A model generated the notes under the pieces. It worked only from the letters and a program-made list of their open reading frames with translations. It was not told where the DNA came from and did not search any database. Below, one piece after another: positions 14,301 to 25,700 of a stretch of DNA of 64,000 bases. The stretch lies in contig NC_088858.1 of NCBI RefSeq assembly GCF_963853765.1, positions 41,540,001-41,604,000 of the forward strand, given 5' to 3'. Each line of letters begins with the position of its first letter. The first letter of the stretch is position 1. The DNA is from Magallana gigas. Taxonomy: Eukaryota. The position numbers and the translations under genes are program-made.

Positions 14301-17300
14301 GTCCAGTAAAAGCTATAGCATCAGCAGCAAGGTGCATTTTAAATTCAGAACATGTTGATGCACTTTATTTCTGATAAATCTCAGCATATAAAAGATTTGG
14401 AATTATATAATTAATATGAACCCTTGACAGATGAAGTGAATGGTCTCACACAGATTAAATGATTCTTTTATGAAATTGTCAAATTTAAAATAATACTTCT
14501 GTAAAATATTCCCCAGCAAGGATTATAATTACCATGTACATATGTTGCTTTTCAATTTATAATTATGATATAAGTATATGACTACTTATATAGGCATATA
14601 ATTACATGTATATGTGTGGATATTTTTAGATATTGAAATGATATACTAGGGAAAATAATTCTTAATGGTTCAAAAATCAAATTAACCAAATGATATTACT
14701 CCCCCCCCCCCCCATTAAAAAAAATATAAATGGGAAATTTCCTAAATTGATAGAGAGAGATAGTTTAAACAGTAATGTAGAACTAGCAGCAAAATGCCAT
14801 ATCATCCCGTTATATTCTGTACAGTGACAGTTTTGAATGAAATAAAATTTTGGTGGAATGAAATTCATTGATCCGCCCCATGTTATGTATATATTTAGCA
14901 CTGCTGTCTCCAGAGGGCGCTTATCAGGAAAACGAAAGTAGAACGGTCATGGCCATTTTTTCGCTGCTTTTTTCGTGTTGGTTGTATCATGTATGGACAG
15001 GGTGGATGTACCGGTATATATTAGACATTACTTAGCTTTTACCTGACAGAGAATTATGTGAAATGGGAAACGTACCTGTTATAGTTTGTTTGACAACCTT
15101 GGTTTGGTCGCAAAAATGGAGTTAGGAGCCATCTCTTTGAACAGGTTGGGACCAATCGCCCAAATGGGATAGAATATCCCAAACGGGTTATTATGACCCA
15201 AACGAGCTATATATAGATATCCCGCACGGGCTACATAACGCGGTTTTTTTTTCTGCAAGAAAAAGAAGACTTGTTTCCGCAAGATGTCGAGTACATTGGT
15301 AAGGAAATTGAGTCATTATCTGTAGATTGAGTTAAATTCTACGTATTTTTCATCCCTATTCACTTCATAAACTTATTTACTAAAACATGAGTCAGTCCTT
15401 TTGCACGGTGACCTTAACTGTTTTTCTTTAAACTTACCTTTATGTTCTAATATCAACAAAAGTTGAAGTAATTTTCTTCGACACTAACACATGGAAGACA
15501 TATTGAAACAATAACTTCTCGCGAGATCAAATTATCCAATCAGAAAATGGCTATGATCTTTGGTGTGGTTGAAATTTAGAGCTTATTGTATGGAGCACCA
15601 GAAGGACTAAAATAAAATATTAATTTATAAGGAAAATGAAATGCGCCAATAACATTAGATTTCGTTCTATATTATAAAATATGACGTTAATATATTAAAT
15701 TTGCATTGAAATTTTTTAACAGAGAAAAAATGGCAGAAGCGGAAAAGTTTCTAATCTAACTCTTGGGAAGAACAGGAGACAGGTTCCATCCCAAGTTGGA
15801 TCAAGGAGCGTTAGCCAATCATTTTTTAAGAGAAAAAACACTCTTCTAGAGAAAGTAAGAATATGTTTTATTAATTGTTTTCAATTAAATTAAATAAATA
15901 AAGTTTATATTTACAAATATACAATTTTGATTATATAATATGATGATATTATGATGTAACATAATGTGATGTTTCATTATATATATATACAATATTTACA
16001 AATAAATAAAGTTTATATTTAGTATTATTTACATATCACACTGTTTTTTTAAAATATCATACAATATATACAGATAAAAATACTACATTTGTGAAACATT
16101 TACATATTCTAATTGCAAGTTTTACAGGTGTATTTACAATTATGTGATAAGGAAAATAACATTCCAAGTAATTGTCAGCATAAAAATTGCAATATATACA
16201 TATAAAAATTTAATCATTTCGGCCCTCCGATTTTAAAACATCATGATAAAATTTAAGAATATCTGCTTTTGTCTTCGATTTAACTTTCCTCCACTCGGCA
16301 TTGATTTTCTCATTGTTTATATCCTCAAGTTCACCTTCAATTATCTTAATAATTTCGGGTTTTGTTTTATTAACAATGGATTCTGCTTTTGTCCTTTCGT
16401 CTGTGAGAACAAAAATCGGAGGAAATTTTTTTCTGTCACTGAGGCTGTGGTTGATAATAAAATTCATAAAGTCTTCGCGGTGTCGCAATGAGTTTACGTG
16501 AAACTCCGTCAATGAACGGTCCAAGGATTTCCCACTAAAAGACGTGTGACTCTTTTCTTTGAACGGCTCATTTATGTAGCCTGATTCTCTGATAGACTGT
16601 CTAAAACAATTGATTTCAAAATCAATATTGTACATGTAAGCGTATTCGGCATCAAGCTCACAAATGCATAGAGCAGCACTCAAGTTTCCTCTGACCTATA
16701 CAAAAATATGAAAAGTTTTGTAAATAAATTGTTTAAAAATAAAAAATAAAACGATTGTAAAATTATTTCATTAAATTAAACATCGCAGAAAAAAGTTAAA
16801 GAAATGACATAGTAAAAGGTAACGGAAATCGGCTTTGCCACCCCCACCCCAAGAAAAAATGGCGGCACCCCCCCCCCTTTTCAAAAACACAATTCTCAAT
16901 AATTTTGGTTCAACACACGCATTATTATGATTGGAAATGTATAATGATGTTAAGATATATATGCATTTGTATGAAAAATATACATGCATGTATCTACTTT
17001 AGGCAAAAGAGATACACGAAACCACAGGCGCAGACTGCGTCTTATACTTAAAGAGCCCTGGAGGGACAGAATATGTGTACAAGTCTGCAGGGGTGAATTT
17101 TGACTTGGTAATAAATTAATGAATACTTTATTTCATATATAAATATTTTATGTATGAACGTCATAAAAAAGAACTCAATTAATATTAAAAGAGTACTTTT
17201 ATTCCCTATGTTATAAATTTCAGGGAAAGATCAATGTTCAAGATGGACCCCAACAAAAAGAAGACGTCCCATCTACAAGCTCAATGGACCCCAGGACATC

Positions 17301-19740
17301 CCTGTCGTTGTCACCCATAAGGAGCAGGACGCGCCATACAGAGACGCAGACATCGGAGTCCTCCTTCTCCACAGTTCAAGATTCTACACTGTGTAGATTC
17401 TGTGGAGAAGGGAGGAAAGATACCAAGGCTCTCTGGATTGGGTGTTCACATGTCTCGCAGCGTGGGCGGGTGAAGCAGACATGCGAGTACTGGGTGCATG
17501 CTTTGTGCGTTGGCATTACAGCCACAACCAAAGCACCTCTGAGCAGAATTGGATGGAAATGCCCTCACCATATCATGATTGCTAAAGATAATGCTAAAGA
17601 TAAGAATAAAAAAAGTAAATGAGTTATTGGGTTTTTTTATTTCAAAATGGCTGAAGTTACCTTTTCTAGTTTGTCAATGCACCTACAAACATTTCTCCAC
17701 TTCTCCTCATCAGGCACTCCATTTTGGATCCACATCTTCGTTTTCCTGTTTTTGGCTTCTAATATAAAATCACCCCCCTCACCCTTGGCATCACTGCCAG
17801 AAACTCTGTAGGACTCATGTTCCTCAATAAACCCACGTACTTTACTTGGGCACTGAATTCGAACAAATGAGTCCCTCATATATGTCTCCATGTAAAATGG
17901 CATGTTAAGGCCAAAGAATAATGGTGAAAACTTTGTTTTAGACGCATTAATTGCTGTGGAATTGTTGCGCCTGACCCCTGCTCTAAATACATGGAGGGCA
18001 AGGCAGTATGAAAATACTACCTCAGCCATAAACTTATAATTGGGGTTTTTAACCCCAACATACCATTCATAGAAGCCACTGACAGAAGGCGAGGATGTAC
18101 TCGGATCCCTCACATATACCAACAAAAGCTCTGCAGCCATTGACTGCAGAAATATCTGAAAAATTTGCCAGCTTTTGTGGTGGTCTGCAAAATAAATGTC
18201 ATAAGATAAAAGTTGGGACAAAACTTTTTTAATATTCGTTTTTATAAAATAAAACTATTTTATTTTTACCTGTTGCGCTCATAAATGAGGCTTGTGCTTT
18301 TGGGCTATTGAAGCCTAAAAGTTTTGCAAGATCTATAAGGATCACATCCCATAGCAGGCGAAATATGGCTTTCGTCATATTGATCTCATAATGACCAAGT
18401 CCTGAAATTAATATTGTGCATTTTTATATGGCATAACGCTGTATTTATTTCTTATTGATTACTAGAAAAAATACAAAATTTCCTTGTTTTATAAAATAAT
18501 TCAAAGAACTATGTACCAGGTAACATGACAATGTCGTTGTACTTTCTACACTTCTCTATGTCGACGTTTAGTGCATGGTCGTAATTCTTTATGTGCTCCT
18601 TGAAATCTGGTTCATCCATGAACTCCATGCCACAATCCGGACAGGTAAACATGTTCTCTACAAAAATATATTACGATGTCAATTTTGATTTCGTGTGATT
18701 TTTATGTTTACACTTTTAATAAATTAATGTATTTTAATTTGCGACAAACCGATGATTCTTGATGCAAGAGTATAGGGCAGGCCATCACACCCAACCATCG
18801 TCCATTTCCTCGCCTCACCCACCTTCGCCTTCTCTCGAATGTGATCAAGAACCTAAGAGCGTATAAATTTAAAATAAATATTAACAACTGCATGTAGTGG
18901 TTGACAAATAGATTGATGAATTAACGATTCATGACTTACAAACCTTCTCAACTGCCTCGTAAGAACAGGGGTTTTCGAAACATGGTTCTCCCATGATGAC
19001 AGTTGGATTTGGTCCATCGTTAGATTTAATGAAAGAATACCTAAAAAATTTAATGATCAAATCATTGCAAATTAACAAAAATGCAATTTTATCGAATTTT
19101 AATTTTGTATAAAAAATCCGTTTATTTAATAATAAAATAATATGTACCTTTCCTCTGCTGTAATATAAGTTATATTTAGCAAATTCTTATCAATGTTGTC
19201 CAGTCCGTTGTCATCCTGATGGCTAACAATTTTCTCTAATTTGTCTCTAATGAATTCATTTCTAAACAGACAAAAAATTATAAAAATATTTATTCAGCAT
19301 ATAATTTATCATTTAATTTTAATTTGATAATAAATGCAATGTGAGTTATAATTTTACTTATATAGAACATAATGTACCTATAGTGCCGAAACGTTTCGAA
19401 GTGTATCATATCAAGATCTTTCATTTTACTAATTGTATCTCGTTTGCCATCACTAGTGTGATTCATCCACTGTCGTGGAGATAGTTCCAGAATATGTTGA
19501 ATATTGCTCTCAATGTCCGGGATAATATGTACCATGGTGGTAACGACACTGGCCTTCCCTTTGTAATTCACCTCCACCTTCCATTTCTTCTCTAAAACCT
19601 ATGGTTGCAACACAAAAAATTATGAAAATTACCTAATTTGGACAGGAATATTTTTTTTTCAATTATAAATTATATGATACTGTTTTAAAATACATGTAAA
19701 TATACGTATACGACTATATGCTAACTCAAATAACTTGTAT

Positions 19741-19790
<50 letters not shown>

Positions 19791-22700
19791 TTTAATCCAA
19801 TTATTTGCCCCAAAATCCTTAACGTTTACCGTACATATAGAATTATATGTGAATATAAGCTTATTGCAACTAAAGTTTATGTTTATTATCACCTGATTAT
19901 TGTCAAAAAATGTTACAACATCAGCGTTTTGGGGGCATTCTATGGCGTCTTTGCTCTGCTCTGAAATCCAGTTCTGAACTGTTGTGTAGGATCCCGATGG
20001 ACTGCCCTTACACCCTATCCTCAAAGCGGATTTGCTACCAGTTATGTAGTATCTAGATAACATAAATAGAGATAATGATTTATTAGAATAAATAATTAAT
20101 TATGCAAACATCACATACACAGTACTAATGTGTAGATTGAATAAAATAGGCGTAATTTGACTGCAATTATAGTCATTACGTGAATACTTGTGTGTGTGTG
20201 TGTGGCTGTATTTTAAACATACCCAAGCAGATTTTGAGAGAAAGACATTGGTGAAACAAAGGAATTGTTTCTACACCCGTAGATAGACTCTACAGTCTTT
20301 GCTAGTCTAATTTCCTCACAAGCATCGTTGCAGATCCCTTTGATGAAATTAACTATAACATGGTTTCTTTCTTGCAACCAGTCTGAAACGACACACAATT
20401 ATAATAATAAATATTTATATCATAGATAATATATAAATATATTCAATAAATAATATAACAGTGTGTATGTGTGTGTGTGTGGGGTGGGGTGGGGGTGGGG
20501 GGGGGGGGTTGGTGTGTGTGTGTGTGGGGGGGGGTGAACATGTGCGTTTATTATCTATAATTTATTTATTTACCCTTCAGATTGAACGTTTCCAAGTAAT
20601 CTACATCTTTATACTGGCTCCCAGAAGTCACAGTATCCTCGTAAACTGCTTTGGTTTGTGTTTTTCCTAAAGTATGAAATATTTATTCAATACCAATGCA
20701 TAATTGCCTCCTTAAAATATATACACAGAGTTAGTTAATTGGTTTTTCTTTGAAATAATAAAATTTCATTTCGTCGTTGCTTGTAAAATATTACAGGTGT
20801 TAGTTAGAGGATATATTACCTAAAGCGTATGATAAGGAAGACAGCTGATCGCTTGTTAGTCTATTATTGGAAACTGCCCCCAGGAACTCTTCAAAATACT
20901 CCAAAATACTGAACTTCTTCTTTTTAGCCGCCTCCTCAGTCTCATCTTCGTGCTGAAGACACTGCTCAGCAAATTTTACACACAGAGAACACAAAAAGGT
21001 AGAATGTGGGAATATAAATTCCCTTTTCAACAAAAAGTTAACGACTTTAACTTTAATTTTTTTGTCGGATATTCTCTGAACAATCTCCTCGTCGTCTGGG
21101 AATAGGGTTGAACAGTATACATGCTGTTTGCAACTGCATTTGCGTTTAGGGGGCATATCTACATAAAAAATCATTAGATAAGATAAAGGTAAATATAAGC
21201 CTCAAAAATTTGTTTCACATAAATGAACATGTGTAACTAATTGTGTATTCAATCTTATTTGTTAATCTTATAAACATAATTTACTTTATATCAGCAATAA
21301 ATATTGCGGACCAGAATGCACCAGTATCAAATTCACTGGGTACCGTTTAATAACTCCAAACTTGCACATAATATCATCTTGATGAATTACATTTTTAAAA
21401 TCACGGATAAATTGCAGTAAACATGCTCATAGGGATTTAATGACTTTGGCAATATGTTTAGACAAATTAACACTAAGAACATTATTTTTCATATTTACAT
21501 AGGTAACGTAATATAATGATGCATGTATGTTAACCTTCATCACTTTTTATTCATTTGTGACATAGATTTTTAAACGTTTATACAACTTTCAAACAACATT
21601 TCCGTAAATTTTTCAATACGTTTCCTCAAAAACATATATACAAGAGTTTTAATAAAATTATTTAATAATTCTCATTATGGCGCACCATACATTCTATTTG
21701 AAAATATGACCTATTTTATAAAACACTCTTCAATTGGACAGTTAGTGATCACATGATCATGCAAGCTTTTCAAAATGGCGGAATGAAGTCGTGTTTTTCA
21801 GCAGGTAAGAGTAATTATGGCTTAACTGAAGTTTAAATAGCTTTAACAAGGAAAATGTAATCGTAAATATAAAAGAGACTTACTTTTCACCTTATGTTCT
21901 CGCACTTCCGCATCAGTTAAGGCTATGAGGACCGAATTTTCAGCTGCCTTTTATATACTTGGGCCCCTATGAGCAATCCAGATCCCTCGCAAAGAAGCGT
22001 ATTTTGGAAATTCTCGTGCAAAATATACCGCCAAATTTTATGTAGCCTGTTTGGGATATCTATATATAGCTCGTTTGGGTCATAATAACCCGTTTGGGAT
22101 ATTCTATCCCATTTGGGCGATTGGTCCCAACCTGTTGAAGGATACCCGCTGTCTCCTAGCAAATGCGTATGCACAGGGATTTTGTTTTGGTCAAACAATG
22201 ACTTGAGTCCACTCTCATTCAAGATCCTAGCGTCATGTGTTGAGCCTGGCCATTTCGCTACGACATCAATTATCTTGTGGAATGGATCAAAGACGACCTG
22301 TGTGTTGATGCTGTGGTAATGATGTCTGTTGACATATTCGTTTTCGTATTGAGAAGGAGCGATAATTTGTACATGTGTGCCATCGATGGCCCCAACAATT
22401 CCAGGAAACCCAGCGATTTTGAAAAACTCTTCTTGGTTTTTGCGAATTTCCTGAAGATTTAGTGGAAATTTAATAAACTGAGCACAAATTCGTGGAGAAG
22501 AGAGACATCTTAGAGTTGCAGTAATTGACCTAGAAACAGTAGGCTGCGAGACACCCATGTCGTCTCCATTGCACAACTGCATTTTACCGGTAGCTAAAAA
22601 TCTAAGTGTTAATAAAATTTTCTGCAGTGGAGAAAGTGCACAGTTTCTGCGTGAACCACTCATAAGTTCGTTACCAATCAACCCCTCTAGAAAACGGATA

Positions 22701-25700
22701 CCGGCTGAATCAAATCTGTACCTCTCAACAAGTTCAGCATCACTGTACTCTACCAAACAGTCTTTTCTTTTGCGAAAACATCTTCTGTGTGCTCCGATGG
22801 CAGCCATTTTGATTTTGAACTTAAGTTTTTCTTAGAACTTTAAGACACCTCAAGAGGACTCTTAGATTTAAGTATTGCTTAAGATTTTTCTTAGGCATAA
22901 GTTGTTTTATGAATAAAACTTAAGTTTAAAACAAATTCTTAGCGTGACTTAAGTATTTTTTATGAGTTTAAGTATTTTCTTACACTTAAGTGCTGTTAAA
23001 GTATCTTTATGAATCCCAGCCCTGATCTTTTAGTGTTGTTTTGAAGGTATTGTTATAAAAGCTTGACCCTCTAGTGTTTTATTAATAAGGTGTAAGTGTT
23101 TAACTCCCTAGTGTTGTGTTGTTGCGAAAGATATAAGAGACTGACCCTCAAAAGTTCTTTTGTAGGTATTGCTTTAAGAGTATGATCAGCTAGTGTTGTA
23201 TTGTAGGTATAGCTATAAGAGCTGTAAGAGTTTGACCTTTTAGTTGTATGTCTGACCATATGTTGTGATGTGTTGTAGCCAAAGGTTTAAATTTTTCAAC
23301 TTATGTTATGCTGTAGGTATCGGGCTCCGGAGTGTCTACTCACTGATGGGTATTATACCTACAAGATGGACATATGGAGTGTGGGCTGTGTCTTCTTTGA
23401 AATCCTTAGGTAAGTTACAAATATCAATCTAACTAAAATCAGATCTCTCTCAATGTCCTTAAGTTTTCGATATGTCTACAGAATATATCCAGAGGAGGAG
23501 ATTGAAGATCTTTTTTTTTCTTTAAAATTGTTCTAGACATACTGCTTTATGCAGATTAATATTTGTAAAATATTCATTTCAACAAAATGTTCTAGCCCTG
23601 CAACAACAAATCCTGCAGCATCAAATCTGCAAATGCAATTTTATGTGAATGCATTTTCTTCCTTACGTAAAGAATACTTTGCACAAAAACGTGTGAAATA
23701 TTTCATCAAGATCAATTGAATGCGAAATACATGTATTTGCATGTAAATAAAATCAGAAGATGATACTGTAAAATATTTTTTTGGTATCAATATTTTGCTT
23801 TGGATGTTAATTTAATGACTTCCAATCTTACTGTAAAAGTTATTCTGGTAGGTACTGGGTACTGTGTATATTAAATTGTTTCATACGTGTACTTTGTTTC
23901 TTTCAGTCTTCACCCTCTTTTCCCTGGTTCAAATGAAGTTGATCAGATTGCTAAGATACATGACATAATGGGTACTCCAGACTCCAGTGTTCTAGATAAA
24001 CTCAAAAAGTGAGTTCTTTTGTAGCTGTTAAATTCATTCATTCTTTTACTCAATATTTCAATCCTCATTACTGGCATGTTACCTCTGATTATTGGTGCAC
24101 AAAAGTTAAGTTTCTTCCTATTTCTTTTTTATCCAATTTACCCACATAAAATGTTATGGGCAAATATAAATCTTTTGCAATAAGGTACATTTTTCTTTTT
24201 TATATGTTAGAGGGAGAGAATTGTGTACATAAAAAAGATTATGTCTTAAATGTCAGAATGATTGGTCTTAGAAATCTTTACAATGAATGATAGATCTAAA
24301 TTGTTTGAGTTTTGCCCTGCTTCCGTGTAAAAAGTATAGTGTAAACTATACGTTTAGCCAAAATAAAATTATTTATTGGAATTGCCTATCCCCTTATTGA
24401 AATACATGTACCCCCACTTTTTTCAGGGAGATTTTTATTTTTTACCAATTTTCAATTAGTCAAACTACAAGTTTGAAAAATTAAAAAAAAAGTTCCCTCC
24501 CTCCCTCCTGGGCGTAAAAACCTCCAGATGGCAATTCCACACGAACATTTTTTAAGGATGTCCAATTGTAAGTTGTTATGTTATTTGTCATGCAGATCAA
24601 GGGGAATGAATTTCAATTTCCCCCAGAAGAAGGGTACGGGTATCGAACGTCTCCTCCCTCACTGTACGCAGGAGGCCATCGAACTTATTTATCAAATGTG
24701 CACTTACGACCCTGATGAGAGAATCACAGCAAAGCAAGCCATACGACACCCGTACTTCAAAGATCTCAGGTCAGTGTTAAAAACTGTAAAAAGTAGATTC
24801 AGCTTCTTTCTTCTCCCTTTTTTTTTAAAGCTTTTTTTTAGAAAACAGGAAAATGTTCAGTTGGGGTAATTTTCACTCAAATAAAAGAGGAAAAAGTACA
24901 TTAATTTGCTTTATTATTCTCTCACATTCTGAAAACTAAGTAATTTATTTGCATATCATGGCATTTGACATATGTTCTGAAAAAGTGAAGTTATGTCAAA
25001 GAAACAATGTTTATGCAGTTTTTTAAATTTTTTATCATCTTTAACAATTTTACACAGAAAAACCCATCCTTACTGTTGAAATTACAAGATTGTGTTAAAA
25101 CAATAAATGAATATATTTTTTATAGTCAACAATTTTTCTTTAAAATTTTTAACAAAATGTATATAAAGAATCAAATTAATATCAACATAATGCTTTGATT
25201 AGCATCACTATATTTCATAGGCATTGAATTTAAAAATACATGTTCTGTTATTCTATGAAATGCAACTTTAATTAATATGTTTAATCAGGGCAACAAAACA
25301 ATCAAAGCAAAGGTAGTATGGCAGATTGCACTATCAATTTTCCTTGTTGTTTTTTTTTTCTTGTGATAATATAATATTGATATATGAATTAGAAACTTAG
25401 ATATGTGTAATCCAGACATAGAAAAGGCAGATTCCATCTTGAATTTGCATATTTGACGTCTTGATGATGTCAGAGCAAGGATTGACATTAACCTTTGTAG
25501 ATTTAGAAACCTGCAAAGTTGACTGACGTAGATATTCTATTCAGTGGGAAGGGTTAATTTTGGGATATACTCAATTGACTCCAAGCCAGCATGCCTATTA
25601 GTTTCATAAATGTAAACTATTCAACTGTGCCTGTAGTCTAATTACTATTTCTACCTGAATTTGAAGCCTGTGTGACTCATCCAGTTAGAGGAATGCGCTT

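Follow-up and report, generated by a model that had tools for sequence, protein, structure and literature searches.

A two-gene oyster DNA transposon with a predicted MADS-PHD partner protein encoded beside its DDE transposase

Introduction

In the CACTA element En/Spm, the TnpD protein is accompanied by a second, DNA-binding protein, TnpA, which recognises short repeated subterminal motifs and also controls the promoter of the element. PIF/Harbinger elements likewise follow a two-gene design, in which a DDE_Tnp_4 transposase has a sequence-specific Myb/SANT partner that is thought to bring it to the transposon ends, and in which large families of miniature inverted-repeat transposable elements (MITEs) are mobilised in trans. 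In ProtoRAG and the RAG1-RAG2 pair, the partner protein carries a C-terminal PHD finger. Here we describe a DNA transposon from the oyster Magallana gigas whose partner protein appears to be of another kind. The element lies at positions 15142-22134 of a 64,000-nucleotide stretch of contig NC_088858.1 (positions 41,540,001 to 41,604,000, forward strand; hereafter the window), and its two genes are predicted to encode a DDE transposase and a protein in which a PHD finger follows a MADS domain. The MADS-box genes of animals are commonly divided into two lineages, SRF and MEF2.

Comparison with these systems reveals both likenesses and differences. Like En/Spm, the oyster transposon is a cut-and-paste element with a putative second DNA-binding protein, and it has the C(2)C and H(4)H motifs of the CMC group, to which CACTA belongs. 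The roles equivalent to those of TnpA, in motif recognition and promoter control, would follow for the oyster partner by analogy. TnpA, however, is neither a MADS nor a PHD protein and is produced by alternative splicing of one transcription unit, whereas the oyster element has two interlocked antisense genes, CAGG rather than CACTA termini and an animal host. CACTA elements duplicate 3 bp of target, as against 5 bp here. With PIF/Harbinger the oyster element would share the two-gene design, the sequence-specific partner and the mobilisation of MITEs in trans; it differs in its transposase, in the 3-bp TWA duplication of Harbinger and in having a MADS-PHD rather than a Myb/SANT partner. ProtoRAG and RAG1-RAG2 resemble it in the 5-bp duplication, in two convergent genes, in a partner with a C-terminal PHD finger and in a RAG1-type N-terminal zinc domain, which is found in relatives of the oyster transposase. 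In contrast to ProtoRAG, the oyster termini are not CACxxTG, the transposase core is no closer to RAG1 or Transib than to the P element or Hermes, and the partner has a predicted MADS domain where the RAG2-type protein has a Kelch propeller. Its PHD finger also matches the generic PHD model, with no RAG2-specific family among the Pfam matches.

Results

An intact transposon inserted in a Harbinger gene

The window unit is an intact, recently mobile cut-and-paste DNA transposon. It spans 6,993 bp, and its limits are exactly those drawn in a first-pass annotation of the window: CAGGTTGGG begins at 15142 and the complement of CAGGTTGGG finishes at 22134. Its terminal inverted repeats (TIRs), 97 nt long with 3 mismatches between the left and right end, occupy 15142..15238 on the plus strand (starting CAGGTTGGGACC) and 22038..22134 on the minus strand. 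The clean 5-bp target-site duplication (TSD) that had been proposed is TTGAA, present at 15137..15141 and again at 22135..22139. The element has inserted into a PIF/Harbinger transposase gene (Pfam DDE_Tnp_4, E 1e-18) and splits its open frame. Because two paralogous Harbinger copies (L035 and L036) are uninterrupted at this site and read across it with a single TTGAA each, both the insertion and its 5-bp duplication can be seen directly. The interrupted frame runs over window positions 22135-22807 on the minus strand and resumes to the left of 15137; the Harbinger element to which it belongs has at least nine further copies in the oyster genome, at 89-97% identity.

The oyster genome (G000, 564 Mb) contains four near-identical full copies of the transposon, namely the window copy, L001, L002 and L003, as well as one 85% copy. 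L001 is 99.9% identical to the window element. In L002 (G000 C1:4475772-4484461) there are 1.7 kb of additional sequence near element position 935; this point falls within the second intron of the MADS gene, downstream of the transposase stop, and both frames of the copy are open. L003 is 98-99% identical and has a frameshifted transposase; both genes are intact in three of the four copies. Many MITEs of 370-430 bp have the same termini as the window element, and those designated L006-L015 (for example, G000 C7:39040564-39040936) have the first 50-72 nt of the TIR in common and are flanked by 5-bp duplications. Among 14 further family insertions the TSD is always 5 bp (12 perfect, 2 with one mismatch), a pattern far beyond chance; overall, a 5-bp TSD was found in all 18 insertions examined, with one mismatch in 2 of the 18.

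A spliced gene predicted to encode a MADS domain and a PHD finger

On the plus strand, four exons with GT/AG borders join to one open frame of 211 aa, which contains the 39-aa string quoted in the first-pass annotation. Exon 1 (15284..15298) supplies the ATG and four codons and ends at the donor TTG/GTAAGG, the least certain of the predicted junctions. Exon 2 (15723..15854) encodes a basic N-terminal part and the first half of the putative MADS helix, ending in KRKNTLLEK; exon 3 (17003..17092) provides the rest of the MADS domain, that is, the end of the helix and two strands; and exon 4 (17224..17622) encodes a linker, the PHD finger and a basic tail, with its TGA stop at 17620-17622.

The 68-aa core that results from splicing has SRF-TF (PF00319) as its sole Pfam family match (28.2 bits, E 1.3e-6, cut-off 26). 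When spliced alike, the cores of two diverged oyster paralogues score 27.1 and 32.0 bits against SRF-TF, the core from the clam Tegillarca granosa 46.1 bits and that from amphioxus 43.7 bits, the last with its in-frame stop read as X. No single exon yields a Pfam MADS match, and a genome scan with PF00319 misses the element exons taken singly. In a phmmer search against all PDB sequences only four matches were returned, corresponding to MCM1, SRF (two chains) and SEPALLATA3 (SEP3). A single-sequence AlphaFold (AF2) model of the core predicts a helix at residues 26-46 (21 residues) and a hairpin of strands at 50-55 and 61-66, with a predicted local-distance difference test score (pLDDT) of 70-90 in this helix-hairpin part. 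On searching the PDB by fold with Foldseek, the top 46 matches of the model are all MADS proteins (SRF, MCM1, SEP3 or MEF2), after which the probability falls to about 0.1; the SEP3 match has a root-mean-square deviation of 1.2 A over 41 residues. The SRF string with which the likeness was first drawn agrees with PDB chains 1hbx and 1srs.

Exon 4 matches the Pfam PHD family (PF00628) with 26 bits (cut-off 24) over exon residues 57-115. The ligands fit the Cys4-His-Cys3 pattern, in the order C-x2-C ... C ... C-x4-H-x2-C ... C-x-H, the final ligand being His. In the oyster window family the finger contains an 8-residue loop insert, which is missing from the Tegillarca protein. Judged by profile and model, the spliced plus-strand product is predicted to be an SRF/MCM1-type MADS domain followed by a PHD finger, so that both domain assignments of the first-pass annotation withstood profile searches and the MADS assignment also fold comparison.

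The host SRF gene (L030, G000 C6:18006351-18006608) is among the closest known comparisons. The element protein has 13/38 identities with it, and both possess TG after the helix and S..G..Y in the hairpin. Compared with host SRF, however, the element protein is highly diverged, its N-terminal arm for DNA contact is altered, and it carries a fused PHD finger but no SAM/MEF2-type extension; its gene is multi-copy and flanked by TIRs. In a separate part of the genome, a single-exon MADS-like stretch below the threshold (L031, G000 C5:25438584-25438703) matches positions 1-40 of PF00319 with 22.6 bits; it belongs to none of the known SRF and MEF2 genes and has no transposase match nearby.

In six diverged element copies (that of the window, one from each of three further oyster families, and those of Tegillarca and amphioxus) a phase 0, GT/AG intron splits the MADS box at the K/A position (S/A in amphioxus), so that the LLEK/AKE junction read from the window is conserved. 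The GT donor immediately after the final K of exon 2 is retained in all diverged copies. In the oyster SRF gene an intron occurs at IMKK/AYEL, equal in position and phase to LLEK/AKEI of the element, and the oyster MEF2 genes have no intron at that position of the MADS box. The agreement in place and phase with host SRF suggests that the transposon MADS gene shares its origin with an SRF-type gene. The PHD exon has a ratio of non-synonymous to synonymous substitution (dN/dS) of 0.19 relative to a diverged family copy, a value based on 60 codons with dS near saturation. RNA-labelled sequencing runs contain about 75% of the words of the element, introns too, and may represent DNA or unspliced RNA.

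Conservation of the gene pair

Comparison among oyster families, Tegillarca and amphioxus shows the predicted MADS gene to be a long-standing component of this transposon lineage. At no fewer than 11 oyster loci (at least 11), a PHD exon stands tail-to-tail with the C-terminal exon of the transposase, with identity down to about 40-50%, and two more MADS/transposase pairs are found among the sub-threshold PF00319 matches of the oyster genome scan. Partner proteins of the diverged oyster families are 40-46% identical over the aligned parts. Two of these families are represented by complete elements, L037 (6,630 bp, TSD GTAAA) and L039 (7,107 bp, TSD CTAAA), both starting CAGGTTGGG and sharing the 9-nt terminus of the window element. 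The family termini have the form CAGG...CCTG, with CAGGTTG in the window element.

The pair extends to other animals. The Tegillarca element, 6.6 kb long and flanked by a TTGAA duplication, has CAGG ends, starts CAGGTCCGGG and contains both genes. In amphioxus a transposase relative (P0100) with a RAG1-like N-terminus is followed by a convergent MADS gene with the same intron (L040:15614-16700, minus strand); the ends of this element were looked for and not found. A metagenome contig from ENA (L033:415-10600) has an intronless gene for a 982-aa transposase and a PHD gene, the two being simply convergent. Its TIRs start GTCGGGACCAAGCGCTCTATAGGG, recognisably akin to the oyster terminus, and no clean duplication flanks them.

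Phased boxes in the terminal repeats

Each TIR contains four phased CCC-N4-GGG boxes. In the left TIR, the boxes lie at 15159, 15178, 15197 and about 15225 on the plus strand (within 15159..15234). Boxes 3 and 4 are separated by CTATATATAG (15209-15218), a likely TATA box some 70 nt ahead of the start codon of the MADS-PHD gene. The right TIR has the same four boxes and CTATATATAG. Seven of the nine CCCAAAYGGG matches in the window fall in the two TIRs, at spacings of 19, 19 and 24 nt. Among 22 autonomous and MITE ends, the CCC and GGG of the boxes are retained in at least 90%, and within MITEs they are invariant. Box 2 is inverted in many MITE ends, with CCCGTTTGGG where the autonomous copy has its reverse complement, CCCAAACGGG; such a reversal is what one would expect if a dimer reads a dyad site. 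The box geometry, CC-six bases-GG, is that of the SRF CArG box, and the TIR of family L037 contains a perfect CC(A/T)6GG. Taken together, these features are suggestive only.

The transposase and its interlocked layout

The minus-strand gene consists of 12 exons, which on homologue-guided splicing yield an open 855-aa frame without a stop. Exons 1-10 lie at 21156-20820, 20666-20574, 20382-20223, 20052-19893, 19598-19378, 19261-19148, 19040-18944, 18852-18750, 18657-18517 and 18401-18270. Exon 11 (17661..18184) encodes the catalytic E (FILEAKNRK), and its donor AAG/GTAAC opens the 965-nt last intron. Exon 12 (16210..16695; acceptor TATAG/GTC, phase 0) encodes the C-terminal ~160 aa and the stop, and aligns to the C-termini of P0012, P0025, P0055 and P0100. 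The 157-aa minus-strand open reading frame at 16210-16683 belongs to this last exon, a point that the first-pass annotation does not make. Two repeat tracts lie in transposase introns: a (GA)n microsatellite at 19745-19790, the source of a small length difference between copies, and a GT/poly-G tract at 20470-20535.

Exon 12 of the transposase is situated inside MADS-PHD intron 2 (1,148 nt), and MADS-PHD exons 3 and 4 are situated inside the last transposase intron (17660-16696) on the opposite strand. Because exons of each gene sit in an intron of the other, the two genes are interlocked in antisense. Their primary transcripts would be complementary over about 1.4 kb (window 15855-17660). The Tegillarca element has the same interlocked layout; for this last transposase exon, no match was obtained in the oyster families L037 and L039.

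The window transposase aligns nearly end to end with P0021 (37% identity), P0025 (32%) and P0055 (29%), and a search with just its C-terminal exon finds 753 relatives at E 1e-3 or better. When 16 full-length relatives are aligned, D (FDN), D (CDGLPY) and E (LE..N..K) form invariant columns. In P0025 these residues are D323, D521 and E773; their counterparts in the window transposase lie in FFDNNQ, GCDGLPY and FILEAKNRK. Beyond the second D, a C-x2-C motif (C538/C541) and an H-x4-H motif (H555/H560) are at least 90% conserved among relatives; at these columns the window transposase has CPDC and H-x5-H. Structural alignment of a P0025 model (pLDDT 78) gives the highest scores for the P element transposase (Z 9.9, 346 residues aligned) and Hermes (Z 9.1), as against Z 5.7 for RAG1 and 5.6 for Transib. 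In a Foldseek search with the same model, no match reached E 1e-3 or better, and the family profile found nothing significant among PDB sequences (RAG1 NZD chain 21wb, E 0.74). Relatives of the window transposase fall in Pfam DUF6589. RAG1_imp_bd, the N-terminal zinc domain of RAG1, was detected in 6 of 17 relatives (P0054, P0085, P0100, P0105, P0128 and P0162) but matched neither exon 1 of the window transposase nor its closest full-length relative, P0021. The minus-strand product is accordingly a DDE transposase of the DUF6589 family with Chapaev/CMC-like motifs; the first-pass annotation, too, had placed a DDE transposase beside the MADS-PHD gene, a reading upheld by the open frame, the D/D/E columns and the alignment of the model to the P element and Hermes.

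Placement among transposon superfamilies

Chapaev transposases are characterised by C(2)C and H(4)H motifs, and Chapaev elements have been described with 3-4-bp duplications and CAC...GTG termini (PMC4079192). A 2026 preprint (10.64898/2026.01.24.700457) describes the N-terminal zinc domain of RAG1 as the 'Chapa' domain of Chapaev and reports that no other transposase lineage retains it consistently. The oyster family resembles Chapaev (CMC) in having a DDE transposase whose second D is followed by C(2)C and H(4)H; it differs in its 5-bp TSD and CAGG...CCTG ends, and no described Chapaev partner gene was found. We lean towards a Chapaev-like placement of the transposase, which the sequence motifs favour, while the combination of a 5-bp duplication and CAGG termini fits no described superfamily cleanly.

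Two other affiliations were considered and are disfavoured. Academ elements are abundant in bivalves (PMC10294476) and make duplications of 3-4 bp (AcademX) or 9-10 bp (AcademH) (PMC10045372). A 5-bp TSD does not fit these descriptions. Many Academ members also encode an XPG nuclease or a helicase, and neither domain was found in any of the 17 relatives scanned. Kinship of the core with RAG/Transib is disfavoured by the model comparison, in which the fold is closer to the P element and Hermes (Z 9-10 versus 5.6-5.7). The supplementary transposable-element library for bivalves (PMC10294476) gave no match to the element termini.

Discussion

We consider it probable that the MADS-PHD partner, acting as a dimer on the TIR boxes, serves the transposition of this two-gene element and that its PHD finger provides a tie to chromatin. 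In such a mechanism, the MADS dimer would bind the phased, dyad-symmetric CCC-N4-GGG boxes in both TIRs, and the bound protein would mark and pair the ends for the transposase, much as TnpA of En/Spm or the Myb-like protein of Harbinger. Regulation of the inward TIR promoters would probably be a further task of the partner. The PHD finger could tether the complex to histone H3 tails, as in RAG2, and so bias where or when transposition occurs, and MITEs that retain the boxes would be mobilised in trans. We infer the binding of the ends, the control of the promoters and the steering by chromatin from circumstantial support and by analogy with these systems. A more far-reaching proposal is also conceivable, though we hold it only tentatively: a lineage common to bivalves and amphioxus may carry an SRF-derived MADS factor, fused to a PHD finger in bivalves, that recognises CArG-like TIR boxes, is needed to mobilise the element and its MITEs and links transposition or expression to chromatin state. 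This lineage would constitute a third, mobile branch of animal MADS genes, in a layout that parallels the RAG1-RAG2 transposon.

Several observations weigh against these interpretations. The splice junctions of the MADS-PHD gene are predicted, and a database search with exon 4 returned solely unspliced read-through proteins from this locus (Logan contigs). The MADS score of the window protein is just 2 bits over the Pfam cut-off; its N-terminal arm is divergent, such that the Pfam alignment begins at profile position 9. The single-sequence core model has a mean pLDDT of 66.7, and the Foldseek E-values for the core are 6e-3 or weaker. In amphioxus, the MADS partner has an RGG-rich tail and no PHD finger, and the copy examined contains an in-frame stop, a TAA at the conserved Lys of the SKRK motif. 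The open reading frame upstream of the PHD exon in the metagenome contig L033 looks MADS-like by eye and has no Pfam MADS match, and we did not count it as MADS. As to the sites, the boxes are CCC-W4-GGG rather than the canonical CC-W6-GG, and an equally good candidate to bind them is the N-terminal zinc domain of the transposase itself.

Other explanations have to be measured against the same evidence. The MADS-PHD protein might be solely an element-encoded transcription regulator, which, bound to the boxes, would turn both inward TIR promoters on or off in autoregulation or copy-number control and take no direct part in transposition chemistry. Three boxes just upstream of CTATATATAG and one just downstream, some 70 nt ahead of the MADS-PHD ATG, are arranged as such a regulator would lead one to expect; the module of boxes and CTATATATAG is repeated at the opposite end, where it faces the transposase gene; every MADS protein studied so far is a transcription factor; and the interlocked antisense layout points to regulated expression. 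Nevertheless, MITEs without genes retain the boxes at both ends, which a cis requirement for mobilisation explains more easily than promoter function does. Regulation and end binding are moreover compatible, TnpA of En/Spm doing both, and we regard an exclusively regulatory role as unlikely.

Less likely still is that the gene is a passenger, a captured piece of a host SRF-type gene without function for the element. DNA transposons related to CACTA elements do capture host gene fragments, and a MADS-box intron with the position and phase of that in host SRF would fit the capture of genomic DNA. Passengers, however, decay quickly and are not shared across phyla, whereas this partner stands tail-to-tail with the transposase in diverged oyster families, Tegillarca and amphioxus, its frames and splice sites are open, and matching dyad boxes are present in the TIRs. 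A passenger role fits poorly because the gene is conserved across phyla and its dN/dS is low. Finally, the gene model itself could be an artefact of chance open stretches with a coincidental likeness to MADS, a view to which junctions derived from sequence alone, single exons without a Pfam match and a window score barely over the cut-off lend some substance. Yet spliced cores that diverged independently pass the curated cut-off in five cases, with 44-46 bits in two; the place of the intron is conserved, the top fold matches are all MADS and a PHD match follows downstream in frame. We deem an artefact very improbable.

Alongside SRF and MEF2, the MADS genes of these elements seem to form a mobile lineage in animals, and a full-text literature search on MADS and transposons found no published transposon-borne MADS gene. 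A diverged, multi-copy lineage carried by transposons would alter the two-lineage picture, and its members would inflate or confuse counts of MADS genes in molluscs and amphioxus. A MADS domain joined to a PHD finger would represent a new class of DNA-binding partner among the few known two-component cut-and-paste systems. The convergent, PHD-bearing partner would also be an independent case for studying how a transposase may have acquired chromatin reading of the RAG2 kind. Because the MITEs scatter the same dyad boxes genome-wide, the oyster offers a ready-made setting in which to ask whether a mobile element could establish a regulatory network by providing both the factor and its sites. 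If our reading is true, this transposon lineage would spread a transcription factor together with hundreds of its own binding sites.

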